DNA of 64,000 nt from Macrostomum lignano (taxonomy: Eukaryota): contig NIVC01001892.1 of assembly GCA_002269645.1 (NCBI GenBank), positions 160,570 through 224,569 on the forward strand, read 5' to 3'. Made by a program: the position numbers and the translations under genes. Below the pieces are notes generated by a model. It made no database searches and was not told the origin of the DNA. It was given only the letters and a program-made list of their open reading frames with translations. This document shows positions 10,916 to 64,000 of this stretch, in pieces (position 1 is the stretch's first letter; every line of letters begins with the position of its first letter).

Positions 10916-10996
10916 AAAGGGACAGCAAGCAAAGCAGCCGGTCCACCAGGAGCCACAGGAAGGACAGTCAGCACTATCAATTCAGCAGCCGCAGTC

Positions 10997-25331: not shown

Positions 25332-26311
25332 TCCCAGATCCTCAGTTGCTGGGCCAGCCTCCCAGATCTCCAGTTGCTGGGCCAGCCTCTCAGATCCTCA
25401 GTTGCTGGGCCAGCCTCCCAGATCCTCAGATGCTGGGCCTCCCAGATCCTTAGTTGCTGGGCCAGCCTCCCAGATCTCCAGTTGCTGGGCCAGCCTCCCA
25501 GATCTCTAGTTGCTGGGCCAGCCTCCCAGATCCTCAGTTGCTGGTCCAGCCTCTCAGATCCTCAGTTGCTGGGCGAGCCTCCCAGATTCCCAGTTGCTGG
25601 GCCAGCTTCTCAGATCCTCTGTTGATGGGCCACCCTCTCATCAGATCCTCAGTTGCTGGGCCGGTGCCATTTTCCAGATCCTCAGTTGCTGGGCCGGTGC
25701 CATTTTCCAGATCCTCAGTTGCTGGGCCGGTGCCATTTTCCAGATCCTCAGTTGCTGGGCCGGTGCCATTTTCCAGATCCTCAGTTGCTGGGCCGGTGCC
25801 ATTTTCCAGATCCTCAGTTGCTGGGCCGGTGCCATTTTCCAGATCCTCAGTTGCTGGGCCGGTGCCATTTTCCAGATCCTCAGTTGCTGGGCCGGTGCCA
25901 TTTTCCAGATCCTCAGTTGCTGGGCCGGTGCCATTTTCCAGATCCTCAGTTGCTGGGCCGGTGCCATTTTCCAGATCCTCAGTTGCTGGGCCGGTGCCAT
26001 TTTCCAGATCCTCAGTTGCTGGGCCGGTGCCATTTTCCAGATCCTCAGTTGCTGGGCCGGTGCCATTTTCCAGATCCTCAGTTGCTGGGCCGGTGCCATT
26101 TTCCAGATCCTCAGTTGCTGGGCCGGTGCCATTTTCCAGATCCTCAGTTGCTGGGCCGGTGCCATTTTCCAGATCCTCAGTTGCTGGGCCGGTGCCATTT
26201 TCCAGATCCTCAGTTGCTGGGCCGGTGCCATTTTCCAGATACTCAGTTGCTGGGCCGGTGCCATTTTCCAGATCCTCAGTTGCTGGGCCGGTGCCATTTT
26301 CCAGATACTCA
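25332..26311. repeat. 33-bp minisatellite (CAGATCCTCAGTTGCTGGGCCGGTGCCATTTTC) x~20 with a degenerate shorter-unit leader
   Basis: Homogeneous from about 25644; the leader shares the CAGATCCTCAGTTGCTGGGCC core. Confidence 0.95.
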
Positions 26312-26723
26312 GGTTGGCCGCCACTTCAGAAAAAATGAGGATAACTTCATTTTTCGCATTAAAATCGCCAATGGCTGAATTTGCTAAAATGTTATTTATT
26401 TACAGATCCAATCAGCGGTTTGAGATCAGACAGGTGCAGCAGAATGCAGCAAAAAATCAATTCTGAGTAGCCAAGCAAAACATAGGCAAATTATAAACTA
26501 CAAGTGTAACCAATAGTTTAATATTGGAATGCATTGCGCAAGATTTGTGCCTGTTTAAAATTAGCAGCATCATAGACAGCATAAGCGGACTAAAGTTTAC
26601 GAATGCTACTTATAGTAGCACAAGTGAACATTGGCAGATAACAAGTAATAAGAAATGTTTGAAAACACCTTGGTGGTTTGTATCAACCGGCTGAAAATAG
26701 GGTGCTGACCCTGAATGCTGAAT

Positions 26724-41200: not shown

Positions 41201-44200
41201 AAAAAATCATAATAAATATTAATACTTTTAGCATATGCGGATTACTATTAAATATATAATAAATATATTAATATATTAAATCTAATATAATATATTAAAT
41301 GTATAATAAATATATGATAAACATTAAATATATTATAATATATGAATATATTAAATATATAATAATATATAAATATAATATATTATATTAAATATATAAT
41401 AAATATTATTTTTATTTAATACATTAGTTAAGACTTCAGAATAGATAAGAGTTACATTAAAAGACTTAATACTCAAATATCAATATACTCAATAGTTCAA
41501 ATTCAATGTCACTGTGTGGCACAAGTACTGTGTGTGTGCCAGTGACAGTGACACTAACACTTAACAGGCAGTGAGGTAGGCAAGCAGGCACTGCGGTAGT
41601 GCGGCTGGCACTGGCAGTGGCAGTAAGCAAAAAGAAGAAAAGCTGAAGCATTAAGTGTAAGGCACTTGGCATTGGAAGCAGTAAGGAAGTAAGAACCAAA
41701 TCAATTGATTGATTCTTTTATTTGAATTTTTAGTTCCTTTACATAGCTTCAATATAAAGAGCCATGTACACAGTCAGTATTCAGTAAGACAACAAGACAA
41801 GACAACAGAACAGAACACAAGTGAAGTGACAACACAACACAACACTCAACTGTCTCAACAGAACAGGCAAACAGACAATGGAAATACAAGTAATTAGCTG
41901 ATACCTGCCTACCTGCTCACCTACCTACCTAAACGAATATGATTACGAATACGATACTGAGTCTACGACTACAACTACCTACGAATACAATACAAATATG
42001 AACACGATTACAAACTCTGATAGATAGCAAACTTCTTGGAAAAATGGTAGCCTTGGCCCTTAATAAGTACTTCTTGGAACGTAAATAGGAAATGTTATTT
42101 ACAAAAGCTTAAAAATGACAAATCAACTTTTTAAAGAATCATATTTTTGCTTTTAGCCTGCAGCCTGCAGCGTGTAAAGTGGAATCAATATTGCATCAAC
42201 TATGTTTTAATTTTATCTTCCTGGAAAAAATCCGATCTTCCTGGAAAGTGGAAACTGGCTGTGGCTGACGCTCACGGTCACAGACACTCACGCTTAGAGC
42301 CTACTACGAATCAATGATATTGCTACTTCACATCATATCATCTATTACTATTACTGCAGTCGTGCAGTGCTTGAGTCTTGAGTGCTGATGCAATGCTTAA
42401 CTGAGTGTTGTGCTGTGCTGTGAATAAAAATAATTTTATTCTTATTTGCACGCAGTTAGTGCCTTTAGGGAAAAAAGACTTGTCCCGATTTCCCGACTTT
42501 TTTAGGGTCGGGCCCGGGCCCGGGTCGGGCCACGATTTTGGTCGGGATTCCCGACTTTTCGGGCCCGGGCCCGGGACTGGGTCGCCCCCTAGATTTAACT
42601 AGCTATATACTAACTGTGATTGTTAGCCAACCGTGTTTTTGTGAACAGGGTTGTTGCCTCTCCTGCACCACGCAGAGGTCATCACAACGCAGGAGTGGGG
42701 ATCTGGATGTATGCAAAGTGACAATAATTACCCCAGCAAAGTATACAGAATTGATTTGCAAAGTGGGCAAAGTCACAGCAGTGAACCAGATCTTCTGCCA
42801 CAGCATTTTCTGCAAAGCGGCCAGTCTTGCAAAGAGACTGAGGATTGCTTTACTGAGTATAACATCAGTTAAGTTTAAAACAGACAGTTTTTTGGCTCTT
42901 TTAATTCGAATAGATGCATGCTTAACTATAGCGAAAAGCAGCCGAGCGGCCAAATAAACTGATAGTAGTCGGATTGGCTCTCGTCTCTATAGCTGAATGA
43001 GACATACCTGTTTGATTACTGTTAACACTTGAGACGCAGGCGTTAGTCAGTACAATAGCAGCTCCCTGCGGCTGCGCTTGCACTGTTGCACTGCTGTTTT
43101 CCATGTGAAAAAATTCTCGATAAGCACTGATTCCAGGTCCAAGCTCGTAGTTATCAAACTCATCAGGTTTGTCTGCCGGGATGTTCACTTCAGCACTCGT
43201 GGCTGGTGTTGCAGTAGCCGTGGCAGGTGTTGCAGTTGCAGCGGCCGTGGCAGGTGTAGCAGTTGCAGCGGCCGTGGCAGGTGTAGCAGTTGCAGCGGCC
43301 GTGGCAGGTGTAGCAGTTGCAGCGGCCGTGGCAGGTGTAGCGGCGCTCGAATGCCCTGCACTTTCAATAAGATCAGAATGTTGGTAATTGACAAATACCA
43401 GATCCGTATTTTCCAACTTTTCAACCAACTGAACACATTCCGCCCTGTTTAAATGATGGGGTGACTTGAAATCGAGAGAAAATCTTCCGCGTGCAAATCT
43501 GGTTTTGTTTCGCTTGTCACTCTCCATTTGCTTCCATGGAATCGGGCCTCTGTTTCCAGCTCTCTTGAAAGCAGTCGTTGCTTTCTCCTGGATTGACAGT
43601 CTCAGCTTCTTCACATCACGAAAAGCGTTGGAAGGTCCGGTAGCTTCAGCTCGAACTGATGCTTCTGTCGTAGCTTCCATTCGGGCTTGAGAGGCGATTT
43701 TTTCTTCTCGATAATATTCCTCTCCTTTCTTGATGATATCAGAAAGCTGTTTCACCGCTGCAGTTAATTCCTCTTGAACTCGGGAAGATACTCCATCAGA
43801 TACGTAACATTCGGGCATATCTGTTGGTATGGATGGAGGAATAACGACGCAGAAAGATTTTTGAGCTCGTTTCAAGTCGACCAGAATGCTGCTTTTAAAA
43901 TCTCTCGGACGATCTTTAGCCCTCTGCCTAAGAGCGTTTTTCTCGTCCTGCGTAAGAGCCTGGTATTCAGCCTTGAGGGCAGGTGTCCATTCTAAAAGTA
44001 ATTGTGGAATGTATGGGATATACAGGAATCGTAGATTCAGATTCAGACGGACACACAGAGAGACAGACAGACGGACAGACAGACAGACGGACACTCTGAC
44101 AGACAGACACTCTGACAGACAGACACTTTGACAGACAGACACTTTGACAGACAGACAGACAGACAGACAGAAAGACGGACAGACACTCTGACAGACACAG

Positions 44201-44237
44201 ACAGACAGACAGACGGACAGAAAAACAGACACACTCT

Positions 44238-44279
<42 letters not shown>

Positions 44280-44959
44280 AAGACAGAAATACAGACAGAC
44301 AGAAAGACAGCCATACAGACAGACAGACAGAAAGACGGACAGACACTCTGACAGACACAGACAGACAGACAGACAGACACTCTGACAGACAGACAGACAG
44401 ACAGAAAAACAGACACACTCTGACAGGCAGACAGACAGACAGACAGACAGAAAGACAGAAATACAGACAGACAGAAAGACAGATATACAGACAGACAGAC
44501 AGACAGAAAGACAGACGTACAAACAGACAGACAGACAGACAGACAGAAATACAGACAGACAGACATACAGACAGACAGACAGAAAGACAGACATACAAAC
44601 TGGGTTTTTTTCGTCCATAACTTGGGTGCGATTTCGCACCCTGTGCTAGATTTCAGGGTGCGATTTTCAAGACCAGAATGCGCTGCACTGCTGCAGACAA
44701 AAACTTGCAAATATTTGGGTGCGCTTTTTGCACCCTGAGTCAAATTTCAGGGTGCGATTTTTAAGACCAGGATGCTATTCGCACCCATTCGCACAAAAAA
44801 AACCCAGCATACAAACAGACAGACAGACAGAAAGACAGAAATACAGACAGACAGACAGACCTGAAATCTGGAATCTGAGATCTAAGATCTGAGATCTAGA
44901 TAACGAAGATATATATAGACAGATATATATAGACAGACAGAGAGACGGACAGACACTCT

Positions 44960-44990
<31 letters not shown>

Positions 44991-45155
44991 GGACACCCTG
45001 ACAGACAGACAGACGCTGACAGACAGACAGAAAGACGGACAGACACTGACAGACAGACAGACAGACAGACACACTCTGACAGACATACAGACAGACAGAC
45101 AGACACATACAGACAGACAGACCATGACAGACAGACAGAAAGACGGACAGACACT

Positions 45156-45195
<40 letters not shown>

Positions 45196-45279
45196 CACTC
45201 TGACAGACATACAGACAGACAGACAGACACATACAGACAGACAGACCATGACAGACAGACAGAAAGACGGACAGACACT

Positions 45280-45321
<42 letters not shown>

Positions 45322-45656
45322 AAGACGGACAGACACTCTGACAGACAGACAGACAGACAGAAAGACAGACACACTCTGAAAGACAGACAGACACTCTGAC
45401 AGACAGACAGACACATACAGACAGACAGACAGACGGACAGACAGGCAGTAAGACAGACATACAGACAGACAGACAGACACTAAGACAGACAGACAGACAG
45501 ACGGACAGACACTCTGACAGACGGACAGACAGACAAAAAGACAGACATACAGACACGACACAGGGATAACTAGAAATATTTGACCAGACTAAAAAATTTT
45601 TACTCACTTGCACCTCCGTGCTCGCTCAAAAACTGTGTGGCTGCCGTGTGAACCAT
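35264..45656 (-). CDS. Tentative multi-exon gene: N-terminal HMG-box-like segment, low-complexity linkers, uncharacterised C-terminal domain (may be two genes)
   Basis: Candidate exons complement(45608-45656, 43008-43991, 40223-40589, 38969-39069, 36201-36380, 35264-35583) have chaining phases (1,1,2,1,1). E1+E2 read [41 protein letters not shown] (HMG-like). The 40223/39069 junction creates TA|A, so a single ORF is not established. Confidence 0.4.
35886..36115. repeat. (TCTG)n-type degenerate microsatellite
   Basis: Visible tetranucleotide tract. Confidence 0.9.
41083..42591. mobile_element. Non-autonomous hAT-like DNA transposon, 1509 bp
   Basis: TIRs TAGGGGGCGACC (41083) and GGTCGCCCCCTA (ends 42591). 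Exact 8-bp TSD GATTTAAC at 41075-41082 and 42592-42599. Subterminal GGGCCCGGG/GTCGGG repeats, AT-rich interior, no transposase ORF. Confidence 0.88.
44050..45550. repeat. (CAGA)n degenerate microsatellite, interrupted by a MITE
   Basis: Source of the spurious VCLSVCLS ORFs. Confidence 0.95.
44600..44807. mobile_element. 208-bp MITE inserted into a (CAGA)n tract
   Basis: TIRs CTGGGTTTTTTT and AAAAAAACCCAG. Exact 8-bp TSD CATACAAA at 44592-44599 and 44808-44815. Internal repeated GGGTGCGA motifs. Confidence 0.8.
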
Positions 45657-46139
45657 ATCTGAGAGTAAAAGTTGTAGGGAATAATTTCTCTTACGACTGT
45701 GTAATAAACAACAACAGAAAAACTGTTTTGTTGAGCATGATTTCTACCCCTAGAATCCCTGTAATTATTTTTATTACGCTGAATTGTAGTTCACTTAAAA
45801 CATACACACAAACAACGCGTCAGTTTTAGTTTTTGGAATCATAGAGTTTTAATTAGACTTTGGAATATTTAATGACTTAGATCATAGCGATTCAAACTAA
45901 GGCCCTCAATATAAAATCACTGAAATTTGCAGAATATGACAACGATCACTTAGCTAAGCTACTTAGTACTTTTTGTACTTTTTTGTCTTGATCGCCTGTC
46001 TGTCTTAAAATTGCCCAGCGATTAAAATTCGCTGGAGCTGGAGTGGCGACACTGCACCCGATTTAAAATTCAAATCAATTACGCTTCTTTATTCTAGAAA
46101 TTCAATTTCTTCCAAAGTCTCTAAAAGTCTCTTGATCTT

Positions 46140-47190
46140 CTACTCTCCTCTCCCCTCTACTCTACTCTCCCCCCTCTACTCTACTTTCCTCTCCCCTTCC
46201 CCTCTACTCTACTCTCCTCTTCCCTCCCCCTCTACTCTACTCTTCTCTCTCCTCCTCCTCTACTCTCCTCTCCCCCCCTCTACTCTACTCTCTCCTCCTC
46301 CTCTACTCTCCTCTCCCCCCCTCTACTTTACTCTCCTCTACCCTCTACTCTACTCTCCCTCCCCCTCTACTCTACTGTCCTCTCCCCCCTCTACTCGACT
46401 CTCCTCTCCCCTCCCCTTCTACTCGACTCTCCTCTCCCCTCCCCCTCTACTCTACTCTCCTCTTCCCTCCCCCTCTACTCTACTCTTCTCTCCCCTCCTC
46501 CTCTACTCTACTCTCCTCTCCCCCCTCTACTTTACTCTCCTCTACCCTCTACTCTACTCTCCCCTCCCCCTCTACTCTACTGTCCTCTCCCCCCTCTACT
46601 CGACTCTCCTCTCCCCTCCCCTTCTACTCGACTCTCCTCTTCCCTCCCCCTCTACTCTACTCTCCTCTTCCCTCCCCTCTACTCTACTCTTCTCTCCCCT
46701 CCTCCTCTACTGTCCTCTCCTCTCCCCCCTCTACTTTACTCTCCTCTACCCTCTACTCTACTCTCCCCTCCCCTCTACTCTACTGTCCTCTCCCCCCCTC
46801 TACTCGACTCTCCTCTCCCCTCCCCTCTACTCTACTCTCCTCTTCCCTCCCCCTCTACTCTACTCTCCTCTTCCCTCCCCTTCTACTCTACTCTCCTCTT
46901 CCCTCCCCCTCTACTCTACTCTCCTCTTCCCTCCCCCTCTACTCTACTCTCTTCTCCCCCCTCTACCTTACTCTCCTCTACCCTCTACTCTACTCTCCTC
47001 TCCCCTCTACTCTCTGCTCTCTCCTCTCCTCTCCATCTCTACTCTACGTTTCTACTCTCCTCTCTTCACCTCTCCTTCCCCCTCTACTCCTCTACTCTAT
47101 TCTCCTCTCCTCTCCTCAGCTCACCTCTCTACTCTCTCCACACTTCTCCTCTCTACTTTCCCCTCCTTATCTTTCCTCTTCCTTCTCTCC
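46140..47190. repeat. Polypyrimidine (CTCTA/CTCC) low-complexity tract
   Basis: About 1 kb almost devoid of G on the + strand. Confidence 0.92.
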
Positions 47191-47687
47191 TCTCTCCGTA
47201 CTCTGGCCCGAAGTCATGCGCTAAGTTGTCAATCTAGCCCTTGACGGCTTGAAGTAAAAATTTTGCCGACGTCTAAGTTAATGAACAAACAAACTGAAAC
47301 AAGCAAGGATCTATAATGACACTTACCTTCTGCGTTGACTCGAAAATAGACGCCTAAGTAGAAAGTGTAGAAAAAGTGAGAGTTGAATTAGAAAATTAGA
47401 AAGAAGTAAGAAAATTATTTAGTAAGAGAGCGTAGGAAGGAAACTGAGTTTCAGTTGCAAGTGTTTAGAGTTTAGACTGGAGACTGCAGACTGCAGAGTT
47501 AGAGTTCGACGAGCTTTCCAACCGGTTCAAATCGGTTTATACTGGACAGATTGCTTTGTCTGCTTTCTGGGAATTTTCCACTCCCCATTTTCCATTACTG
47601 TTGTTTACGGAAAGTGGGGGAAAGAAACTCCGTGCACTTAGAGGACAAGTGAGTTCGCATCTCCTCATCCAATGGCAGCTCGCTATT

Positions 47688-50635
47688 CTCTTCGGTGGCA
47701 GAGGAATAGAATAGAATAGAATAGAATAGAATAGAATAGAATAGAATAGAATAGAATAGAATACAATAGAATAGAATAGAATAGAATAGAATAGAATAGA
47801 ATAGAATAGAATAGAATAGAATAGAATAGAATACAATAGAATAGAATAGAATAGAATAGAATAGAATAGAATAGAATAGAATAGAATAGAATACAATAGA
47901 ATAGAATAGAATAGAATAGAATAGAATAGAATAGAATAGAATAGAATAGAATAGAATAGAATAGAATAGAATAGAATAGAATACAATAGAATAGAATATT
48001 CTTGGATACTGCACTGTCTAAGAAGAATTATTTATTCTTTTTTCTCTTTAGACTGTTATTTTTGGCTGCTAAGAAATTATTTTACCTCGCGTACTTCAGC
48101 CGCACTACTAAGTAGTGCAAAAAGGATATGAAAGGTAGAATCGTGTTTTATGCGCATAGCGAATGACTTTGCGACTGTCAATACACATTACTGGACTGGT
48201 CACCAGAGGAAATGTGCTATAGCAAATTATCTATGCAACAAACATACTGCGCGAGAACACACTGCCCTTCCATGGGGGCGCTGTATTTGGGAGTGCTGTC
48301 TTTGGGTGGCGCTTGATCTCGCCACACTGATTTTGGGCGAGATTCTTACCAGCCCTCTGAGATCCGCCCTCTCTCCCCGGATTCACCCAGCAGCGCAAGC
48401 CGGTGGTGGGCAGCAGGAGGCCATCGGGCTGCAGAGGCCCCAAACCGGAGCCCCACAGAAGCTGCTGCTCTTCGGTGGCAGAGGAATAGAATAGAATAGA
48501 ATAGAATAGAATAGAATAGAATAGAATAGAATAGAATAGAATAGAATAGAATAGAATAGAATACAATAGAATAGAATATTCTTGGATACTGCACTGTCTA
48601 AGAAGAATTATTTATTCTTTTTTCTCTTTAGACTGTTATTTTTGGCTGCTAAGAAATTATTTTACCTCACGTACTTCAGCCGCACTACTAAGTAGTGCAA
48701 AAAGGATATGAAAGGTAGAATCGTGTTTTATGCGCATAGCGAATGACTTTGCGACTGTCAATACACATTACTGGACTGGTCACCAGAGGAAATGTGCTAT
48801 AGCAAATTATCTATGCAACAAACATACTGCGCGAGAACACACTGCCCTTCCATGGGGGCGCTGTATTTGGGAGTGCTGTCTTTGGGTGGCGCTTGATCTC
48901 GCCACACTGATTTTGGGCGAGATTCTTACCAGCCCTCTGAGATCCGCCCTCTCTCCCCGGACTCACCCAGCAGCGCAAGCCGGTGGTGGGCAGCAGGAGG
49001 CCATCGGGCTGCAGAGGCCCCAAACCGGAGCCCCACAGAAGCTGCTGCTCTTCGGTGGCAGAGGAATAGAATAGAATAGAATAGAATAGAATAGAATAGA
49101 ATAGAATAGAATAGAATAGAATAGAATAGAATAGAATACAATAGAATAGAATATTCTTGGATACTGCACTGTCTAAGAAGAATTATTTATTCTTTTTTCT
49201 CTTTAGACTGTTATTTTTGGCTGCTAAGAAATTATTTTACCTCGCGTACTTCAGCCGCACTACTAAGTAGTGCAAAAAGGATATGAAAGGTAGAATCGTG
49301 TTTTATGCGCATAGCGAATGACTTTGCGACTGTCAATACACATTACTGGACTGGTCACCAGAGGAAATGTGCTATAGCAAATTATCTATGCAACAAACAT
49401 ACTGCGCGAGAACACACTGCCCTTCCATGGGGGCGCTGTATTTGGGAGTGCTGTCTTTGGGTGGCGCTTGATCTCGCCACACTGATTTTGGGCGAGATTC
49501 TTACCAGCCCTCTGAGATCCGCCCTCTCTCCCCGGATTCACCCAGCAGCGCAAGCCGGTGGTGGGCAGCAGGAGGCCATCGGGCTGCAGAGGCCCCAAAC
49601 CGGAGCCCCACAGAAGCTGCTGCTCTTCGGTGGCAGAGGAATAGAATAGAATAGAATAGAATAGAATAGAATAGAATAGAATAGAATAGAATAGAATAGA
49701 ATAGAATACAATAGAATAGAATATTCTTGGATACTGCACTGTCTAAGAAGAATTATTTATTCTTTTTTCTCTTTAGACTGTTATTTTTGGCTGCTAAGAA
49801 ATTATTTTACCTCGCGTACTTCAGCGCACTACTAAGTAGTGCAAAAAGGATATGAAAGGTAGAATCGTGTTTTATGCGCATAGCGAATGACTTTGCGACT
49901 GTCAATACACATTACTGGACTGGTCACCAGAGGAAATGTGCTATAGCAAATTATCTATGCAACAAACATACTGCGCGAGAACACACTGCCCTTCCATGGG
50001 GGCGCTGTATTTGGGAGTGCTGTCTTTGGGTGGCGCTTGATCTCGCCACACTGATTTTGGGCGAGATTCTTACCAGCCCTCTGAGATCCGCCCTCTCTCC
50101 CCGGACTCACCCAGCAGCGCAAGCCGGTGGTGGGCAGCAGGAGGCCATCGGGCTGCAGAGGCCCCAAACCGGAGCCCCACAGAAGCTGCTGCTCTTCGGT
50201 GGCAGAGGAATAGAATAGAATAGAATAGAATAGAATAGAATAGAATAGAATAGAATAGAATAGAATAGAATAGAATAGAATAGAATACAATAGAATAGAA
50301 TATTCTTGGATACTGCACTGTCTAAGAAGAATTATTTATTCTTTTTTCTCTTTAGACTGTTATTTTTGGCTGCTAAGAAATTATTTTACCTCGCGTACTT
50401 CAGCCGCACTACTAAGTAGTGCAAAAAGGATATGAAAGGTAGAATCGTGTTTTATGCGCATAGCGAATGACTTTGCGACTGTCAATACACATTACTGGAC
50501 TGGTCACCAGAGGAAATGTGCTATAGCAAATTATCTATGCAACAAACATACTGCGCGAGAACACACTGCCCTTCCATGGGGGCGCTGTATTTGGGAGTGC
50601 TGTCTTTGGGTGGCGCTTGATCTCGCCACACTGAT
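47688..50635. repeat. ~575-bp satellite, 4 full + 1 partial units, each with a variable (AATAG)n block
   Basis: Repeated ORF starts at 48150, 48730, 49305, 49874 and 50454; each unit begins CTCTTCGGTGGCAGAGG(AATAG)n. Confidence 0.95.
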
Positions 50636-50929
50636 CCATTGGCACTGGAGTTATCGCAGCTATTCTTAACAAAATAACTCAGGTTGAAAGAGATCTTGCA
50701 GAGTGGATCGCGAATAATATATATTTGCTACTTTTCCTCTGCAGTGCTTGAGGCTCTAGCTTAATCAGCTTTCCAGATATTCAATGGCGGAGATTCCGAA
50801 AAATTCTAATGTATTCAAATGGGGGAATTCGGGAAAATCAATCAGGAATTGCCAAGCTGTAGTAATAAACTCAGATTTGAGATTCTACAGATCATTAGAG
50901 CGTGCCAGTCGGTGTCTTCCGCAGAATGA

Positions 50930-52104: not shown

Positions 52105-53598
52105 TTAAATAATCGACGAATTCAGCCGGAAATTCGGCTCCGAGTTCAGCTGCTGGTGACCAGACAGTGTGGCGTCGAATTCGCCCTCGTAATCTTCGTC
52201 ATCGTTATCCACTTTGACATCAAGATCGAGGTCGTCCTCGGATTTCGGATCGGCGGAGGCCTGCAGGTTAGGGGTGGCGACCGAGTTTTTGAAAGGCCAT
52301 TTGAGGACAGGGAGATGATGATAAATGAGGTCATTCAAGGATGAGGAAATATATGCCATGAAAGGTCGATATTTAGGGACACGGACAGGGGTCATGTAGG
52401 ACAAGACAAGGGGTTATTTAGGGACATGAGTATTGGTCATTTAAGGTCACAAACATCATGACGGTATCACATGTTTAGTTGCACGCATATAAAGTGGTGA
52501 GTCATACATTAACATGGGTTGATAAAATTTCCCAGCTCACCGATCGATTATAGCCTAGCCGGGAGTCGGTCTCGCCGTCTCGACTATCGTCGTTGCCCCC
52601 AGCCAGCGATGCGGCTAAACAAGCGGCCACATCGAAGGCGGTTGTAGCGGCAGCAGCGTTAGCAGCAGTCCTACTACCCATAGTATTGCTGCCTAACACA
52701 GCAGCGCCGGTAGTATTCGCCAGTGGCAAATAAATTTTTCTAGCCACCACCGTCTGCTTCTGCTGCTGCTGCTGGCTGTCAGAGCCGGTCGCTCCCGATG
52801 CCGGGTATCGCCGACGGCCGGAACGGGCGCGCAGCTGCGGCTCCCCTGCACTCAGGCGTCTCTGCGCGAGAGATAAGAATAGGAAAGGGGTCAAATGAGG
52901 ACAATAATTCTAAGCAGAGGTCATTTCAGGACAAAAATCAACCCTGGGGTCAGTTGAGGACAAAAGTCTACCCAGGGGTCATTTGAGGACAGAATCTATC
53001 TGGAGGTCATTTGAGGACAAACTAATATACGTAAAGATCATTTGAGGGCAAACATCTACCGTGGGGTCATTGAAGACAGAGGTTATTTGGGGCAAAAAAA
53101 GTGCGCAGGGGTCAACTGTCCTTACCTGGCCAACAGTTGTGACGGCGGCGGCGGAGGCGGCGCACCACCCCGTCGGAACAAGGCGGCAGCGTCAGCGCCT
53201 TTGACAGTCGCCGATTGGCCCGCCTGGGTCGGCCGCCGAGATCGCCAAGACTGGGCGACATGGACGACGCCTGCTCCGTCGAAGACTGCTGCGGCAGAGT
53301 TGTTGTTAAAGAGTCGGTGGCCATCGACGCGGCAGCGGCGACGGCGGCTGCGGCCGTGGCGTCGAGTAGAGGCTGGTCCAAGACAACGGCTGCCGACAGC
53401 TGCTGGCGAGAGCAGACGGCTCGACTCGAAGGCTCTGCTGGCAGGCGCGGCAACAGCGGCGCCGAATGATGAAGCGCAGTTTAGCCGAACGATCGCGCTC
53501 CGCAAGGACCTGCAATTGCAGCTGCATGCGAAGATTGGTCAGGTCCATCTGGAGGTCGTCCACACGATGCAGGCGTTTCTCGTAGTGCTGCCGAATCT
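52105..53598 (-). CDS. MAP3K13: 3' exons of a dual leucine zipper kinase (MAP3K12/13, DLK/LZK/wallenda family); kinase exons not in window
   Basis: The exon starting at 53598 encodes IRQHYEKRLHRVDDLQMDLTNLRMQLQL versus recalled DLK [28 protein letters not shown] (14/28 identical). Further phase-0 exons lie at 52541-52861 and 52105-52260 (acidic SEDDLDLDV...YEGEFD, stop). The splice path through 53126-53510 is unresolved. Confidence 0.7.
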
Positions 53599-53952
53599 CT
53601 GGGGGCGAAAGAAATGACAAGAGACTGTTAGGCGGCAAACAAGGACACAGGACTTCTAGAGGTTAAAGGACACAAAAGGTCTCTTAGAGGTCGAATGAGA
53701 ACACAGAACTATAAGGGTAAAATGAGGACACAGGACTGTTAGGGGTCAAATGAGGACACGGGACTGTTGAGGGTCAATTGAGGACACGGAGCTGTTATGG
53801 GTCAAACTAGGACACGCGGGGACTGTTGTTGTGATAAGTTTTTGCATCATGTAGCAAACAGACCATGGCACATTTGCACTAATGCACCATATCTAGACCA
53901 GCAGTATCTGAAATAGAAGCAAAAGCCATTTATAAGATAATATACATGTAGG

Positions 53953-54244
53953 TCAGTGAAGCAAATATCTAAAATTGTTAACAGAAGTATAAAAGAAAAA
54001 TGAACAAGAAAAAATGGTGCTCAGTTAGCCGATTCTAAAAGTGAATCGTGGATCCCCTGAGCCACGAAGAGGCCGAACACCGTTCAGGGGGTTAATCCAT
54101 AGTTCACTTTGCAGAGCAAAACAAATTCCACAGCACAGTAAACAGTGCACAGCGGTCTTTTGCAGCATTGAACTAAGGATCAATCCCGCCACTAAGAGCG
54201 GGAAGCCACAGCAAGAAATGCAAAGCGGCCAGCTTTTTGAAAGC
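53953..54244. repeat. 292-bp direct repeat, copy 1
   Basis: Identical by eye to 57933-58224 (offset 3980); starts TCAGTGAAGCAAATATCT, ends CTTTTTGAAAGC. Confidence 0.95.
54016..54090 (-). ncRNA. HDV-like self-cleaving ribozyme candidate, copy 1
   Basis: Minus strand: P1 CCCCUGA/UCAGGGG, P2 GGUGUUCG/UGAGCACC, P3 GCC/GGC, L3 UCUUCGU, P4 CGAUUC/GAAUCG, J4/2 GCUAA, in correct double-pseudoknot order. Deviations: C rather than G at +1, weak P1.1, one extra C before P2'. Confidence 0.55.
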
Positions 54245-54312
54245 CGATAAAATCTTATAGCGAACTCCCCATGCAACGGGGGCTGATGGTTTCAGAGAAT
54301 AAACTTAGCCTT

Positions 54313-56274
54313 TCAGTCTTTAAGCCACGGATGCAGTCGAAGCACATCCGAGCGCCTTTCTCCATAATCGTAGAGTAGCTCCTCGCCTCGAGCAATGTCT
54401 CGAATGGCTTGGAAGACCAGATGCGGTTTATTGTTTACATCAGCAACAATCGGCTTCAAGTTATTTCTTCGCCGGCTATGGTTAATGTACCGACCGACGT
54501 ACTGGAAAGTGTTGGTTGCGTCGATGCAATAAGCTTGATCTCGCCAGGAAAAGAAAAACAAGAAGCAGCATGGCTTCCCTTGCTTTACAATATCTTCCTC
54601 CCGGGCGAGGCGTGCTTTTTGTCCTTGGATTAATTCTCCACCGTAAGTACAGACGACAGTGCCTTTTGGGAGGTCCGTACGGGCAAATGCCCCCAGACCC
54701 TCTGCGTCGACGCTACCGGCCTGAACCACGACGTTGCCGGTAGAAATCATTGTCTGTCGAACCACATCGGCCATAGTGAGTTGCCTCATAGACGCCATTT
54801 CGGTCGGCAGGGATCGCTCTGGACTCCCACGGCTAGCTCGGCCGTGAGGCGTCACGTGAAGGAGCGGCGTGCATGCTCCGTCCGGAGTTGTGATAGTGTC
54901 CGGGACTAGACGCTCGCGATTAGCTGCCATTGCAGGAGGGGCAACCGCAGCAGCGTGGCTATTTGAGTCCTCAGGCGAAGTCACAGTCGGCTCGAAAGGC
55001 GGATCATTGGACAGGCCATCTTTATTGGCTTCTCCTCTTTGGAGCCGAACGCTAAGGGGAACCTGACAGTGAAGAAAATGAAGAGGACAAATGATTCATA
55101 GTGGTAACGGCATACAAATGCAGATTAACCCCAACGCTTTAATCTTTGCATTGAATAAACATGCAACAAAATTGTTCCTAAGAACACTGTTTCACACAAT
55201 AAACTGTGGACTTCATTTAGTTTGACCAACTTACTTCATTGGAGGTCGCCGGTACAGCGTCGGTAGATAAGGCGACGTCTATAGTTGCAGCAGCGGCAGA
55301 CTCCGGGACCAGAAGCTCGCGATTAGCTGCCATTGCAGGAGGGGCAACCGCAGCAGCGTGGCTATTTGAGTCCTCAGGCGAAGTCACAGTCGGCTCGAAA
55401 GGCGGATCATTGGACAGGCCATCTTTATTGGCTTCTCCTCTTTGGAGCCGAACGCTAAGGGGAACCTGACAGTGAAGAAAAAAGTACATCATAATGGTTA
55501 CAACATGCAATTAAAGATGAACGTAACCCTTTGTTATTTTCATTAAACATACATGCAACCCAGCTGATGGTAAGATAATTGCTCTACACCATAAACCATG
55601 GGCCAGCATAAAAGACCCCACCCCTTGTTGTTAATCCCTAATATTTCCTTTTGAGCAAAGTATCTAAAAGCTTTTATTTATTCATTTTTCACTTTCATCT
55701 TCTCAAATTTACCAAACATTCAACTTTTTAAGAAAAGTTGCGACCTGACCTGACCCGCGACCTGATGCTTTCAAGGTTACAGGCCGCAGCGTTTTAACAA
55801 CAAAAAACCATGGACACAAATTTTAGTTTAACACACCTCATTGGAGGTCGCCATTTCAGCGTCGGTAGCTAAGTCCGCGTCCATTGTTATAGCGGCGGCA
55901 GATTCCGGCAGGCTTTCAAGCGGCAAGGCTGGATTAAGATTTAGTTGAGGCCGGATGCCGTAAAAGGCCAACAACCGCAGGCCCTCAATTCTGTCATATG
56001 CCCTTGCCCTCGCATCAGCTACGGCTGCACGGCCGACAACAAATGCTTCGCCGAAATGGCACAGCCGCATGTGTTGTCTCATATTAGAGGCGGCAAATGA
56101 GCTGCACAGCTGGCAAAGCTTTAAATCTCTTTTGCCATGCCAACGTTTGTAGAGAATGTAGGCTTCGACTCGATCGTAGTTTGCTGTATGCTTGCTTCGA
56201 GCGTGTCGAAGGAGGGTGGCGGACCGATTGGTGGAATAGTCACACATCGGGCAAATAAACTGGTCAGGGTCCAT
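54313..56274 (-). CDS. C2H2 zinc finger x2 fused to PR-Set7/SETD8(KMT5A)-type SET domain, 3 exons, 472 aa
   Basis: Exons complement(55837-56274, 55235-55465, 54313-55062), all phase 0. Fingers CPMC-x12-HARSKH and CQLC-x10-HMRLCH. SET motifs GLGAFA, VCTYGG, YCIDAT, GRYINHS, GEELLYDYG, C-terminal HPWL match the SETD8 family. Confidence 0.85.
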
Positions 56275-56636
56275 ATTGAATTGATTCAAGTTTTCAACGT
56301 AAACGTTTAGAGTAAAATTTAGTTCTCGATAAAACGTGTCGCGCAAACTTTCTGAAAATGAGGAAAAATCAAAATGAAACCTTTAACTACGGTGAAAGAT
56401 GAATGAACTAGGCATCTTGGTAATAGGTACTTTACAATGCACTCTTAAAGACTGTCAGACTGAAAGCAAAGAAGGCATGTTCCGCTCGCTCGTAGTCTCA
56501 GGACAATAATAAAAGGCAGCTGAACAGATCAAATCAAATGTTTATTTGAAAGGTTGGGCGATACAACGGACTTGATAACGCATTACAGTCCCGAATTTCT
56601 GCATAGTAGCATTAGGTTGCCAGTCACACTGAAGTT

Positions 56637-57254
56637 TTAAAGCAAATCGAGTAGTGAAACGGAATTCGAAATTGTAGGATTTGCATTTTGTTGCAACGAA
56701 ACGCTGGGAGAAGCTGGATTAAAAAAGCCATTGAAATCATTGTCTAACGTAGTTACACTACAACTGTGGCAGGGGCATGTACAATGGCTATCAGGGCAAT
56801 TGAAAATGTTTGAACGTAAAACACTTGGACCGGAGAGCTGTGAATCGGCACACTTTTCGGAGGGGTTCCTGGCGGCTAGTGATTGCAGCTTAGAAATTAA
56901 AACTTCAGCGTTTTCTTTAGCCTCGTCTAAGTTATAGGTAGATTGCGAATTTCCATTTGTCTTAGATTGCTTTCCATGTTTTACCCTAACATGGCTTGGT
57001 AAATTCGAAGTGATAACACTGCAAACAGGACACTGATAGAGGTAACCCGATTCGGTTCGCTTCTTTGCCTTTAAAAGTCCAAAAAGGCGGATTGTGGCAT
57101 CAATTTGCTCTTCAGTGGCATCAGGGTGCTTTCGATTGCAATGTACCTTGAAACCAGATGCGCGTCCTGTCCAAGCATTGCAGATCAAACAGGAAATCTG
57201 CGTATGAACCTGCACCATGTGAGACATTGTCCCGCGGGTGACATTCAAGAGCAT
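56637..57254 (-). CDS. C2H2 zinc finger x2 protein (cargo ORF; start uncertain)
   Basis: CLIC-x12-HCNRKH and CPVC-x9-HVRVKH, followed by a Cys/His-rich tail. Stop at 56637 and AATAAA on the minus strand at 56541-56546. Confidence 0.65.
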   Translation of the reverse strand: MLLNVTRGTMSHMVQVHTQISCLICNAWTGRASGFKVHCNRKHPDATEEQIDATIRLFGLLKAKKRTESGYLYQCPVCSVITSNLPSHVRVKHGKQSKTNGNSQSTYNLDEAKENAEVLISKLQSLAARNPSEKCADSQLSGPSVLRSNIFNCPDSHCTCPCHSCSVTTLDNDFNGFFNPASPSVSLQQNANPTISNSVSLLDLL

Positions 57255-57932
57255 CGGGAAAACGTTGTGGGCTTATTATTATACTGCTTCCAGGGAGGTT
57301 AGGCAAATTAAGTCTTAATTTTTGTATTCTAAGACAATGACGGAGAGGAAATGCTTTAGAGTATAAAAAATTCTGAATCTCACATCTGAATCTCCTATCC
57401 TCTGATCGGAACCAGGTCTATCTTCCAACATGAACATCCTTTCCTCTCAACTGAAACCCTCGAGTCCGAGTCAATAAGGCTACAGGCCAAGCAGGGTGCC
57501 ATTAGTTAGTGTGGGCAGTTACATTTTCAATCTCCCCAGCCAAGCCTAAAGTGCTGCTATAAATGGGATAATGAGTGCATGGCGGGATGGGTCACTGCTA
57601 TTGCTTATGGTTAACACGTAACAAAAGTAAAAGACAAAAATGTGTATATCACGATTACTAGTTCCACTTTTATTATACTTTCGCGCTATCTTTGAAGCAG
57701 TATGCAAATATACTATTGGCATAGCGGGCGTCTAAACGCAGGCTAACATAAGAGAACTGACAAATTGCAGTGAGTGTCAAAGTGTAGTACAACGAAAAGG
57801 GACAAAAGTAAGACGCATATGCGCCTCTCGCTGCAACGACAGGCGACTGCATATAAATGCATGAAATATTAAGTAATACAAACGAGAGAATAAAACACAT
57901 TCAAGAAAGTTGCTCGTAGTTATAAATTTCAA

Positions 57933-58224
57933 TCAGTGAAGCAAATATCTAAAATTGTTAACAGAAGTATAAAAGAAAAATGAACAAGAAAAAATGGTGC
58001 TCAGTTAGCCGATTCTAAAAGTGAATCGTGGATCCCCTGAGCCACGAAGAGGCCGAACACCGTTCAGGGGGTTAATCCATAGTTCACTTTGCAGAGCAAA
58101 ACAAATTCCACAGCACAGTAAACAGTGCACAGCGGTCTTTTGCAGCATTGAACTAAGGATCAATCCCGCCACTAAGAGCGGGAAGCCACAGCAAGAAATG
58201 CAAAGCGGCCAGCTTTTTGAAAGC
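57933..58224. repeat. 292-bp direct repeat, copy 2
   Basis: Identical by eye to 53953-54244; lies 164 nt downstream of the transposase stop. Confidence 0.95.
57996..58070 (-). ncRNA. HDV-like self-cleaving ribozyme candidate, copy 2
   Basis: Same sequence and pairing as copy 1 (offset 3980). Confidence 0.55.
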
Positions 58225-58387
58225 TGAAATACTGCTTACTTTGGTAGGCTGTAAACTTTACAGTAAATTTCTAAGAGAAATCGGTATACGTTTATAAACT
58301 GGTTTAGAATTTCATGTAAACAAGCTAGTTTACATCCGAAATATGATTATCCTATGGATAACAGTTTCAAGTAATCGAGTTTCGGAA

Positions 58388-61178
58388 TTAAATACTATCA
58401 ATCCATTCTTCATCTGACTCAGACTGCTCACGACTTGATTCAACGTCTGAATGACTCGGGGCTTCAACGTCATCTGGCTGATTTACGTTGGTACCAGCGT
58501 CGTTTGGATGCTGCGCATCAGCAGCAGCAGCTTCAATGCTTGCGTCAATGTGATCAAAGCGAAGAGCTTGAAGTTGCTTTAAAATAGTCTGAAAGAGGCA
58601 TCGAAACTGGGCTGGCAATCCAGGTTGATGATGGAGTGTTTCACAGTGCTGTTCAAGTTTAATTTGAACGTCACGCCACTCTTGCACAATAATGATCTTT
58701 TCCTCCGCTAGACGATTCAGCTTGTGATACAAGTCAACCACCCGTCGCTTGAACCTCTCAGACACATCGATCGAAAGACCGAAGTAGAAGTCTGACTGGA
58801 AGTCGCGAAGCTGAATCATAGTGGGCACGCGAAGGCCTGGCGGAAGCGAGCGGGCGGCCATTCGAATGTCTGCATTTAAAGCCGCAACCTTGCGTAGACA
58901 TGCTCGATTTTCTTTTTGTCCATCTGAGCAGCCACTCTGACGGATCCAATAGAATCGTTCCAAAGCAAGTGCCTTAAGCTTTGCGTAAGGTTCCCTGCTC
59001 AATGGAGAGTCGCTATTGGGATTTATGGCTTCTGCATGCCATTGTTGAGCAAGATTTAAAATGGCTACCTCAGAGATTCCGGCAGGAATAGTTAATTTGT
59101 TGTTCCGCATCAAATCGCCAGCTTGTAGAAGCAATTGCTCCATTTCAGCTGAACAAGACGCGGCTGTGCGAGTTATTAGTTTTAATCGAGCAGAAAACCA
59201 ATTGGAGGCGTACAACAACTGATTAGCATTGAAGCAATGCAAAATGTAAGACATACAAGCACTTCTGCGATCGGACCGCATGTACTTTAAGCTTTTACCA
59301 AACGGTCGTAGTGCAGACCAAGCGCGCTCCGTATTCTCCCCGTCGCAAAGACCCGCTCCAGGAGTTACCCGCACGGAGTACTTTAGTTGGCATTGTCTCT
59401 CGTGGCCCAGCACATGAAAGGCGTTCACAGCGCACGTGACACTGTTAAGCTGTACACCAGATGCTGACACCATGGACTTGACACGATTGGAAATGCGACA
59501 ACCTGATTTTAGGAAAAAGTTTTTAAATGAATAAATAATTGAGCTTCGTGTCGCAGTACGCATGCACGTACATAAGTAAGCACAAGCATAAGTAAGCACA
59601 CACTATAAGTGTATAGTGTAAATAAGTGCAGCATGATAGAAACACGATAAAAATCAACTCACCAACATCATAGATAAAAATGAGATCCTTTGAGACGGGC
59701 TGTGTCATTAGGTAATGACGAAGAGTCTGTTCTGGATAGCACAGGCCCTCACCAGCTGTAATAATGTTGCAACCTGTCAGAAGCCTGTTATGCCGGCAAA
59801 ATAAGCCAAAGAAACCGTTGACATCGTGCTTGCTGGCCCTGATCACGGGTTTTTCTGTTCCAGCCTTCCAGTTAGTGCAGCCTTCTGCAGACACTTGTGT
59901 CGTAGGAGGCGGTACAGTTGCTGGTTCTACATGAATAAGCGGTGACGGCAATGAGCGTTCAGAATCTGGCACTAGACGTTGCTTCGAACCCATACTTTGT
60001 AGTCTTCGCCATCCAAATAGAGCATCAGCACAAACTACAGACTTCCGACTTGAATTTTGGTCAGGACACAAAAGACAACTAGCAGGCCAGCTTGCTGAAC
60101 ACCTCTGCAACTCTCGAAACCGCAGTAGGACTCCATTACGCTGCAATCTCTGATACACTCGATCGGCTAAACCAGGGTTCCAGCGACCTTGTCCTACGAC
60201 GGAGCCTTTGAAAAGACAGGTAATTGCACGAGACAGTGGCAGTTGACCGTCAAAGCACAAGGAGTCAAGAGTTGATAGAAAGCTAATTGAAAAAAATGTT
60301 AACAATTCGCCAACGCGTGACTCGCTTCCAGGAAAGTATCCTTTTGCTAGCATGGCATCAACTTTATCACAGGATTGGCACGTATAAATTCTGGCGCAAA
60401 CAATTCCGTTGATGTCAATAATCTGAATTTCGGATGATGTTGTATACTCAGAAGACAAGCTTGATTCGCTACAGCAGAATAGAGAGACAGGCTCTTCTTC
60501 TTGAATGTCTTCAAACATTAGCGATTGAGCCTAGGAAAAAGGGTTAAATTTTGTATGCGGTGTTATAAAAATATTATTCCGTACTAAGGCTATTAGCATT
60601 CTAAATACTTTTGTTTCACGTCAAATTTAATACAGCGTTATACTGCCAAATAGGCGTCATTGTTTTCTTCACAGTAAACTAATATCCTTAGAAATTGCAA
60701 TTTAGATTTTAAAACAACTTACATTCCACTGGAGGAACTTGTGAGCAGCAAAATTTCCATGCGTTATCTTTTTACAATCACTGCAGACATCGTACTGACA
60801 ATGAACACATCGGAAAACTCCAGGCTGCATGTCGCAACGAACACAGCATTTTAACTCGAATGACTGTTTATAACCGGCAGTGTAACTTTCCACAATGGCC
60901 GTGTAGTCTTCCCATTCCGTGAATTTAGGCGGCTGTTCAAACTTATTACTAATCTGTTCAGGCATAGAGTCATGGTTTCCTGCACCCAGATCTTGTGAAA
61001 GACTGCCGCCAGTGACTGTGGAACACGAGGAAGCCGTGGCAATCGATGTAGTACTTTCCAATGCATTAGGCGCATTAGACGTTCGCAATATCCTTGGCCT
61101 TCCGCGTTGGCCAGTCATCAGTACTACTTCAGATTGTCTTTTTCTCGATTTCGCATTTAGTTTTCTTGACGAAATCAT
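58388..61178 (-). CDS. KDZ superfamily (Kyakuja-type) transposase with N-terminal CxC zinc-chelating domain, 3 exons, about 812 aa
   Basis: Exons complement(60723-61178, 59663-60530, 58388-59502) join in frame (2439 nt). CCVRC..RCVHC..CSDC..H..H..W; IIDING..C..C..GYFP; CLLCP; VCADALF; GLFCRH; GEGLCY; YDVG|C; AFHVLGHERQCQ; GAGLCDGENTERAWSAL are KDZ signatures, with all three putative catalytic acids present. Confidence 0.88.
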
Positions 61179-62513
61179 TGCTGAAATTCGTGAGGATCAT
61201 TCTGAATTGTATATTACATCATATGCTAAGCTCAAAAGGTGTTTATCTATATCAGTGTCTTTTTAGAGCAGGTGCTTAGCCATCTGCTCAGCCACCTGCA
61301 AGGCAACCTGCTCAGGCATTGCAGCTCAGGCAGTGGCTGGCTTGGAGCATCAGCTGATTTGATTAAAGTTGATTAAAATCTAGCAGATTTATAGTCTATA
61401 ATTTGTTATCCATAGCCATATTGCATTGAGTTGTGTTTATAAGTATATAATAAGCAGCTTAAATTATTATTTGGTGTAATTGGGATGCTTTGGAATATGT
61501 TTTCTAAATTTTCCACTTCATCTTGTATTCTTGATTGTTGTATTTTCTTACAAGTCTTTTCTGGGTCCTTATGTCTATGAAAAAGGGTAGGCCTACCTGC
61601 ATATAGTGGCTCTTTGATTTTAATTTATAAATTTTAGATGTATACATTTTTTGTTTTAATAGTTGCAGTTTAATGAGCCACAACACAAATGCCCACAAAG
61701 TTTTTATCAGTTTTATTTTATTTGGAATATTCCAATAAATTATAATATATAAATATATATTATTTATCCTAACAAAAAGAATTCTATATGAATATTATAT
61801 TTACATATTTATAGTCACAGAATCATGCACTGAAAAAGTTCTTCTTAGGCTTGATAACAATATAGAAACATATAGAAACTAATAGATAAAAGTCTTAAAT
61901 AACATTTATCATTTTTGATATTCTGTTTTTTAATTTGACTAAGAACATCTAAAGAAATCATACTTTTTTATTAGAATATTTAAACTTATTTAAAGGCAAC
62001 AAAGGTACAAAAGAATAGGCAGCCTTATGGTCATAACATTATGGTTTTAACTTTTTTCTGTCAATTCACTAACTTTGAATTACCAATAGATTAAAAATTT
62101 AATAGATTATATGGCCATTAATGTTTATATCTAATTATGCAAATACTATAATTTTATCTATAGTTTGTTTCAATCTTCCAAAGCTTTTTATTTGTTTTCA
62201 AAAGGTACACAAAGTTAATGATGTCTTTTGCTTAAAAAAATGTCAATTTTTTATAAAAATAGCTTTTTGCCAACTGATATTATACTAATCCAACATTTTA
62301 CCATTCATTTTTGGCATTTGTTATTTGTCCAATGACTGGACAAATAGCCTTTTTGCTATTTGTCTGCTTAAATTGCTAACACAAGTATCTGTTTGTTTTA
62401 TGATGAATATTCTAAATTTTTAAGACCTTTTCTTGTATATTAATTAATATTTTCTTATATACTGTTAGCAAAGCAATGTATTCAATTTGGCATAATTTTG
62501 TATATAAGACACA

Positions 62514-62665
62514 CTAGTTCCCAGTGAGCTCCGCGAAACCCACAAACCCAAGGACACGCGCGAAGCGCGTGTCCTTGGGTTTGTGGGGTGAGCGGAGCGA
62601 ACGCGCGAGGCACAAAGTGCCGAGCATGAGGAACAAACAGCCAGCCAATGCGCGAAGCGCATTGG
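62514..62665. mobile_element. Helitron/Helentron-like terminus with GCGAAGC-loop hairpins
   Basis: CTAG at 62514-62517, a perfect 23-bp stem with GAA loop (62539-62587), a 5-bp hairpin (62609-62621) and a 9-bp stem with GAA loop (62645-62665). The class assignment is inferred. Confidence 0.45.
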
Positions 62666-64000
62666 GTGGTCTGGCTTGTGACGAATATAATAATATGAGA
62701 CGTGTGCATCGAAAAAATGACAAGAAAAATCTCACAAAAACTGCTGTAACTTCAAAACTACAAGTGCGAATTTCACAAGTGAGGTGTCATTTTAAAGAGA
62801 AGAATCTGATCTATTTAACGAGTATAGTTTTGTATGGATTCACTGCGGAGAAAAGGAACAGGCTTCAGTTGAAATGTTTGTCTTAAGATTATGTCTTTAC
62901 AAAAGTGCATTTCCTCATGCACATTAAAACTCGAGCTAAAAATGTTCGAGGGTTATAGGTGCGCCTTACTAAGATGCATAACATTATTGGGTTGTTTTTT
63001 TCAATTGTATCAAAAAGTTGGCACTTTGGTTGCAAAAAATGCAAAAATTGAAAATGTACTTTTACAGTTTTTTGCATTTTTTTCTATACTGCTAATAGTT
63101 AAGCATACATACTATGCACCAATTGATGCGCAATTCAAAGATACACAAGTGTGGAAGTTTTCAATTCCTAAACATTTGAAATCAGAAAGTTATCGACGAA
63201 AGACTAAAAATCATGATCTCAAACTGATTTGAGGAAAAGTGCTCATTATAATTTTTGGAATATGGAAGAAACAATTCAACGCCGTCATCTAATTCCAAAC
63301 TAACTGTACTTTAAGGTACTGCGATGATTTTTTTATTGAAAGAGCGAAACCTGTTTAAATATTTGAAAAAATGGAAAAAAAGTACCTTTTTTCATAGAAA
63401 TACACTCTTTTGACTGCTTAATCCGATTTCCAACAACAAAATAGTTGCTTTCCTGCTGGTGCAAACCGTTATTAGGGTGAATTTTCAAAATTGCATACTG
63501 TGCCAAAAGTAAACTGAAGCTTAATATTTATAAACATTAGAAACGGGACCACTAATGGGTATTTTACTTTGGTTACTTACTATGGACTAAACTGGCACTG
63601 GCAGAGACAGATTTGAGAGAAACTAATTGCTCCATTGTATTTGTATTTGGCTCCAGCGTTACAAATTACAATAGCTATTTCGGGGTCTAACCGGCTAAGT
63701 TATCAAAAAAGCTAGATACCAATCACCAGTTTCATCATCAGCTATACCTACCACATTTTATAGTCACATGCAACAGTAATACCTCCTTTAAAAGTTTTCA
63801 ATATCTAAAATGATGTGTTAAATTTTATAAAATTTCATAAACAGTGAAATTTTAGCTGTTTACGTGCTGGTGGTTTGAACGTAGCTACTTTGTGCGAAAA
63901 TACACTGTCATTAATACCGTACCTATTATTGTATTTATTGTATTGAAAGTTGATGTGTAAATTGTACTTTTCTATTTTTTTGTCATTCGTTATCGCACTC

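Follow-up and report, generated by a model that had tools for sequence, protein, structure and literature searches.

In fungi, transposons of the KDZ superfamily (Kyakuja, Dileera and Zisupton), among others, carry TET/JBP dioxygenase genes. Target-site duplications are 7 bp long in Kyakuja elements, which end in CA..TG, and 8 bp long in Zisupton and Dileera elements, which have terminal inverted repeats (PMC12730594). SET-carrying transposons have been described in oomycetes, namely HarbingerS, MuDR and the Phytophthora proto-Helentron (PMC12730594, PMC4067079). A SET cargo on a transposon is therefore already known, and what is new in the locus reported here is the combination of genes and the host group. 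This locus lies in a stretch of 64,000 nucleotides (hereafter the window; contig NIVC01001892.1, positions 160,570 to 224,569) of the genome of Macrostomum lignano, a flatworm that is free-living (assembly GCA_002269645.1). The minus strand of the window holds a KDZ transposase gene, an open reading frame (ORF) for a zinc-finger protein, designated ORF A, a gene joining zinc fingers to a SET domain, designated ZnF-SET, and both copies of a repeat, R292. In the literature searched, neither a KDZ element with a SET8-like gene nor an animal element with a histone-type methyltransferase was found, in agreement with the preliminary description of this DNA, made from the sequence alone, which knew of no described KDZ+SET8 element.

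Comparison of the predicted proteins with those of a second M. lignano locus shows that the three genes were inherited as a unit across 50-70% protein divergence. On a slight balance of probability, this unit would be an old, low-copy KDZ element with a chromatin-writer cargo, or the immobilised descendant of such an element, present in two anciently diverged M. lignano lineages. The features of the window on which this reading is based are the following.

60723..61178, minus strand: exon 1 of the KDZ gene, with the ATG at 61178, a basic N-terminus and a B-box-like Cys/His cluster
59663..60530, minus strand: exon 2 of the KDZ gene, with a CxC-like cluster, followed by the initial half of the KDZ catalytic domain
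58388..59502, minus strand: exon 3 of the KDZ gene, with the remaining half of the KDZ domain (NAFHxxGHxxxCQ ... DGENTER) plus the C-terminal region
57933..58224, minus strand: copy 1 of R292, non-coding, starting 164 nt past the KDZ stop codon
56637..57254, minus strand: ORF A, 205 amino acids (aa), two C2H2 fingers
55837..56274, minus strand: first exon of ZnF-SET, a double C2H2 module paralogous to ORF A
55235..55465, minus strand: optional linker exon of ZnF-SET, 77 codons, product of a 403-bp tandem duplication
54313..55062, minus strand: last exon of ZnF-SET, a linker and a SET8-like SET domain, with the C-terminus ...ELLYDYGERRSDVLRLHPWLKD before the stop codon
53953..54244, minus strand: copy 2 of R292, starting 68 nt past the SET stop codon

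The preliminary description announced an uninterrupted transposase of three exons and about 812 aa, and the gene models match transcript-based GenBank proteins exactly. Indeed, the KDZ gene is intact (three exons, 2439 nt spliced, 812 aa), its introns are of the GT-AG type with compatible exon phases, the splice donor of exon 1 is AAT/GTAAGT, the stop codon is at 58390-58388, and the spliced product is identical to GenBank protein P0010, this exact protein being found on four M. lignano contigs of GCA_002269645.1. The Pfam KDZ profile (PF18758) is matched with 118.7 bits, the cut-off being 26.6 bits, over profile positions 4-212 of 217. It is thus confirmed that the window transposase is an intact protein of the KDZ superfamily, as had been proposed. 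A CxC domain and D/D/E residues had also been claimed: the acidic residues were borne out, being invariant with fungal KDZ, whereas the match to CxC1 is weak (15.5-17 bits against a cut-off of 26.9). The aligned region of relatives in Tubulanus and Branchiostoma does pass CxC1 or CxC2. The B-box match is likewise below threshold (about 18 bits against 24-27). In a comparison with the three closest M. lignano paralogues and one fungal KDZ protein, the residues D321, D388, D440, H471, H475, C479, D495, E497 and E500 are all kept, as is R501, and the motif D...YD.xC...FHxxGHxxxCQ...DGExxER is present and agrees with the consensus of 147 relatives. The best non-animal matches of the protein are KDZ proteins of Agaricomycetes, and the closest fungal ones come from a species of the Polyporales, for which the TET+ elements reported are all Kyakuja; a placement in Kyakuja is no more than suggested by this.

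Both accessory genes announced downstream of the transposase, a zinc-finger ORF and a ZnF-SET gene on the same strand, are present. ORF A has an AATAAA signal 91 nt past its stop codon. The ZnF-SET gene contains a repeat, D2 (54899-55078 and 55302-55481, 99% identical), and has two splice forms: the long one is contained exactly in GenBank proteins P0020/P0021 and the short one, in which the optional exon is skipped, in P0001. The GenBank annotation of M. lignano rests on RNA sequencing and a de novo transcriptome, and its genes are named by transcript cluster (PMC5730564); because this RNA-based annotation contains both forms exactly, they are considered transcript-supported. UniProt models of 1347 aa (P0005/P0023; A0A1I8J3S7, A0A1I8J1A4) were also considered as a possible fusion protein and were set aside as a probable gene-prediction artefact; they join parts of KDZ, ZnF-SET and exons of the next downstream gene, while leaving out ORF A as well as portions of the KDZ domain. 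In the text and supplements of the M. lignano expression papers that were searched, these gene identifiers were not found.

The SET domain of ZnF-SET is recognised by Pfam (E=3.3e-20), and its best matches in PDB are KMT5A/SET8 throughout (E=2.8e-27), followed by a Cryptosporidium SET protein (2.6e-17) and EZH2 (2.4e-13). It is thus closer in sequence to KMT5A than to other SET families, in line with the SET8 identity given in the preliminary description. The tyrosine of Y..GE, NHS, ELLYDYG and a C-terminal HPWLK are conserved. The N-termini of ORF A and ZnF-SET correspond to one and the same two-finger module, with invariant C8, C11, H24, H29, C54, C57, H68 and H73. A profile of this module matches CTCF fingers best (E=3e-7, finger 1), and these fingers are therefore of a classical, plausibly DNA-binding type. 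By its predicted structure, ZnF-SET combines a finger module with a SET8-like exon across an intron and is not a canonical KMT5A.

The closest paralogue of the KDZ protein, P0006 (48% identity), is located on another M. lignano contig, at a locus designated family 2 (L001, L007, L008), the window belonging to family 1. There, downstream of a KDZ gene and in the same orientation, come (i) a ZnF-SET gene of 300 aa, whose finger region is 41% identical to that of the window over about 80 aa and whose SET domain is 40% identical, and (ii) a finger ORF of 272 aa, 31% identical to ORF A (E=6e-12). The two accessory genes have therefore changed places with respect to the window, and an intron after IYDVG is at a position common to both KDZ genes. 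By tblastx and sensitive blastn, the two loci resemble each other only in the three genes and in a (GAATA)n microsatellite, which is also the only part shared by their downstream satellite arrays; no conserved non-coding termini common to both families were found. Divergence of the accessory genes is roughly on a par with that of the transposases, which argues for a long co-residence. The preliminary description had named two observations that would count against a transposon with a SET cargo, namely a single-copy SET gene that is syntenic with relatives and is the host PR-Set7 orthologue, and other transposases that never carry one; neither applies, given the second, diverged trio.

The two R292 copies are direct, 292 nt long and 100% identical, and they are the only copies in the window; none were found in unrelated loci, and Rfam gave no match. 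An origin of R292 from a short interspersed element was considered and dropped, there being no Rfam match and no clear tRNA-like sequence by eye. Family 2 has a repeat of its own, R553, of 553 nt, identical copies of which bracket the SET gene in a layout like that of R292. Its copy 1 begins inside the KDZ coding sequence, 46 nt ahead of the stop codon, its copy 2 starts 66 nt past the SET stop codon, and a third copy, which is partial (254 nt, 97% identical), lies 140 nt past the finger ORF. R292 and R553 show no sequence relation. In one copy of family 2 (L006), precisely the SET gene and a single R copy are missing, a loss that would be simply explained by recombination between direct R repeats. 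Judging from these positions, R292 and R553 are best read as a family-specific non-coding module that recurs after genes and not as the ends of a mobile cassette. The identical bracketing repeats of the preliminary description are thus present, but they do not mark a separate mobile cassette.

The probable role of this R module is in 3'-end formation or intergenic processing, possibly within a trans-spliced unit. Three points fit such a role: AATAAA is absent within 400 nt of the KDZ and SET genes, the annotated ZnF-SET mRNA starts immediately 3' of an AG (56353-56352) that could serve as a trans-splice acceptor, and KDZ, ZnF-SET and the next gene carry the common transcript-cluster prefix Mlig004599. 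The accession numbers of the ZnF-SET proteins also run consecutively with those of the KDZ proteins. Downstream, copy 2 of R292 is adjoined by two arrays of about seven repeats of 28-29 nt (52887-53078 and 53623-53815) with the core GGGTCAWWTGAGGACA in one orientation (10 motif matches against 0.17 expected). These arrays could be part of the unit. The GGGTCAWWTGAGGACA motif is absent upstream of KDZ and in family 2, and the arrays were rejected as candidate subterminal binding sites, being on one side only and in family 1 only.

Both loci are found on many contigs (at least 9 for family 1 and at least 8 for family 2 in the cluster listings), and the window is 99.3-99.9% identical to NIVC01000910.1, NIVC01001944.1 and NIVC01002504.1. 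In family 1 the comparison took in L003, L004 and L005 beside the window, three further contigs being left out, and in family 2 it took in L001 and L006-L009. Gene by gene, they differ by 0-2 substitutions in unique sequence, and dN/dS (the ratio of non-synonymous to synonymous substitution rates) between copies of one locus is uninformative at 0-2 substitutions per gene. Blocks of (GAATA)n recur every ~575 bp at 47700-50640 of the window and form a long-period tandem array, inside which the contigs L004 and L005 end; this helps to explain why the locus of the window is on many contigs. Two of the family-2 copies (L001 and L006) form a tail-to-tail inverted duplication on NIVC01001431.1, with arms of at least ~19 kb separated by ~3.4 kb, one arm having the SET cassette and the other lacking it; this pair may be a genuine palindrome or may stem from the assembly. 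Among the family-1 copies, a 3.3-kb insertion at 62518-64000 of the window and beyond (5330-8659 in L004) is missing from L003 and L005, which are otherwise collinear. A 6-bp duplication, ACTAGT, stands on either side of it, and a 34-nt hairpin (62528-62598) is located at its KDZ-proximal edge; no long ORF in it encodes a recognisable domain.

Several of these comparisons weigh against a mobile element with a cargo. The family-1 copies are collinear over more than 13 kb, including both flanks, with few substitutions, and the family-2 copies are near-identical and share their flanks too. The assembly, Mlig_3_7, is redundant, with 180 Mb of duplicated blocks at >=95% identity, owing to extra large chromosomes in the sequenced line (PMC5730564); collinear copies in such an assembly therefore represent one locus per family and not transposed copies. 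No dispersed copies at different sites were seen among the compared copies of both families, and the search for terminal inverted repeats and target-site duplications, which the preliminary description had proposed to define, yielded none in the absence of independent insertions for comparison, the only inverted termini being AT-rich 11-14-mers. Furthermore, the GenBank annotation dropped transcripts overlapping annotated repeats (PMC5730564), so that the genes discussed here had not been flagged as repetitive.

Relatives of the transposase outside these two loci point in the same direction. Word-indexed protein searches with ZnF-SET, KDZ and a three-sequence KDZ profile reached no other animals; beyond the proteins of M. 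lignano itself, their only matches were two KDZ proteins from fungi and a pair of anonymous SET proteins. An exhaustive KDZ profile search gave 2725 hits, including Branchiostoma, Apostichopus, Lytechinus, Tubulanus, Priapulus and Astyanax, and no SET or finger module was found in the best 147 of these 2725 relatives, nor at the Tubulanus and Priapulus KDZ loci. M. lignano itself has at least four further, strongly diverged KDZ lineages (L002, L011, L012, L013/L014), whose genes are intron-rich (one spans 11 kb), low-copy and transcript-annotated and could be domesticated transposases; none of the four has a SET or finger partner within 10 kb. On present data, the SET/finger cargo would thus be peculiar to the ancestor that the two M. 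lignano lineages share. In sum, of the animal transposon with a SET cargo that had been proposed, the linkage holds at a second locus, whereas mobility is not borne out by the collinear copies and no SET gene accompanies the other KDZ lineages examined. In the nemertean Tubulanus polymorphus (L015, OZ123231.1), a KDZ gene is followed by a same-strand C2H2 gene of 497 aa and by a gene with GTF2I/Chromo hits; the fingers of this C2H2 gene are not significantly similar to those of the M. lignano module.

A serious, if rather doubtful, alternative is that the locus is a domesticated cluster, that is, a KDZ element of ancient date that was immobilised together with its accessory genes, co-opted for a host chromatin function and copied once by segmental duplication. 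The single locus per family with collinear, near-identical copies, the expressed and intron-containing genes that are not annotated as repeats, the lack of recovered termini, and the existence of at least six diverged, low-copy and intron-rich M. lignano KDZ genes resembling a host gene family are all consistent with this possibility. However, inter-locus homology ends at the three genes, without flanking paralogues, and a rearranged gene order and a SET cassette present or absent among otherwise identical copies would be unusual for a host cluster. In addition, all the invariant residues of the transposase family are kept, and in other animals the related clade has the behaviour of multi-copy transposons: its KDZ genes often occur there in several copies on several chromosomes, as in Apostichopus and in Tubulanus, whose members share more than 90% identity on five chromosomes. 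Should the cluster be domesticated, a whole multi-gene transposon module would have been co-opted as a unit. At the other extreme, it seems unlikely that the locus is a fully autonomous animal KDZ transposon with its own sequence-targeted writer, in which the fingers would guide a SET8-type enzyme to deposit monomethylation of histone H4 lysine 20 (H4K20me1). A single locus per lineage implies that the element is autonomous with a very low copy number, or else that it is immobilised, and the favoured reading, an old low-copy element with a chromatin-writer cargo or its immobilised descendant, covers both. It draws on the intact KDZ gene, the recurrent linkage, the shared finger module, the KMT5A-like SET domain and expression, to which the multi-copy relatives, the swapped gene order, the R modules and the loss of SET in L006 may be added.

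Two explanations would dissociate the accessory genes from the transposase. In one, which is very unlikely, ORF A and ZnF-SET are a separate mobile or recently captured cassette, ended by repeats comparable to long terminal repeats or long target duplications, that landed beside an unrelated transposase. Identical repeats do bracket exactly the two accessory genes in the window (R292) and the SET gene in family 2 (R553), where one copy is without the cassette. However, R553 begins inside the KDZ coding sequence and recurs as a third, partial copy after the finger ORF, the two repeats are unrelated, the accessory genes have diverged about like the transposases (48%, 40% and 31% identity), and a repeat-mediated deletion would simply account for the copy without SET. 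In the other, an ordinary KDZ element was inserted by chance beside the host PR-Set7/KMT5A orthologue, as could be supposed from KMT5A being the best solved relative of the SET domain and from the single locus of the window family. Yet a KDZ gene of only 48% identity has the same neighbours at the second locus, which in effect excludes a fortuitous adjacency to a host PR-Set7; the finger N-terminus is common to the adjacent ORF and is not the KMT5A N-terminal region; and the SET domain is merely 39% (family 1) or 29% (family 2) identical to human SET8. Furthermore, the finding of two paralogues, 40% identical and each beside a KDZ gene, together with the finger N-terminus, speaks against orthology to the host KMT5A. 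Chance adjacency is accordingly regarded as extremely improbable.

Elsewhere in the window, tandem and microsatellite arrays at 3784-5867, 10500-12000, 19935-20640, 25454-26466 and 42922-47244 generate spurious long ORFs in several frames, and GC-rich exons of a WD40-repeat gene are located at ~700-3600.

If the transposase is active, it would move its DNA by cut-and-paste transposition. ORF A could be a DNA-binding accessory, a finger protein without SET that would bind together with ZnF-SET or compete with it. The fingers of ZnF-SET would bind DNA in a sequence-specific manner and bring the SET domain to specific DNA, where it would monomethylate a lysine on nearby nucleosomes, predicted by homology to be H4K20. 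The trio may be expressed as one transcription unit cut by trans-splicing, and the R module would make the SET cassette prone to loss by recombination. Were the element autonomous, H4K20me1 would be placed at the element or at its excision and insertion sites and could modulate how the element is silenced, when it replicates or how breaks are repaired; gain or loss of the SET cassette would proceed via the repeated R modules. RNA interference is routine in M. lignano. Transgenesis is also available (PMC5730564), and self-marking by a transposase-linked writer is therefore experimentally approachable in this animal.

Among the known systems, the fungal KDZ transposons with TET/JBP genes resemble the window in having a PF18758 transposase with a chromatin- or DNA-modifier gene beside it on the same strand. 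They differ in their cargo, a DNA-base dioxygenase in fungi and a finger-bearing protein lysine methyltransferase in the flatworm, and in being multi-copy with defined ends, whereas neither ends nor dispersed copies were found for the M. lignano locus. The SET elements of oomycetes share with the M. lignano unit an accessory gene of the SET histone-methyltransferase type carried on the element; however, they belong to other transposase superfamilies and non-animal hosts, no fused finger module is reported for them, and the SET domain of the proto-Helentron is Clr4/Suv39-like and not SET8-like. Several two-gene DNA transposons encode a small DNA-binding protein beside the transposase, such as the Myb-like ORF2 of PIF/Harbinger and TnpA of En/Spm. 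By analogy, ORF A could play the role of these proteins, although no binding sites or subterminal repeats were matched at both ends in M. lignano. As for the SET domain, the closest solved relative is KMT5A/SET8/PR-Set7, an H4K20 monomethyltransferase, with which ZnF-SET has the cofactor and catalytic motifs and HPWLK in common, but the N-terminus is a regulatory region in KMT5A and a double C2H2 finger in ZnF-SET. Finally, SETMAR of primates also associates a SET methyltransferase with a DNA transposase (mariner) in an animal. SETMAR is a single fused host gene that arose where a transposon inserted beside a pre-existing SET gene, whereas in M. lignano the genes are separate, the methyltransferase is SET8-like and the association is found in two diverged lineages.

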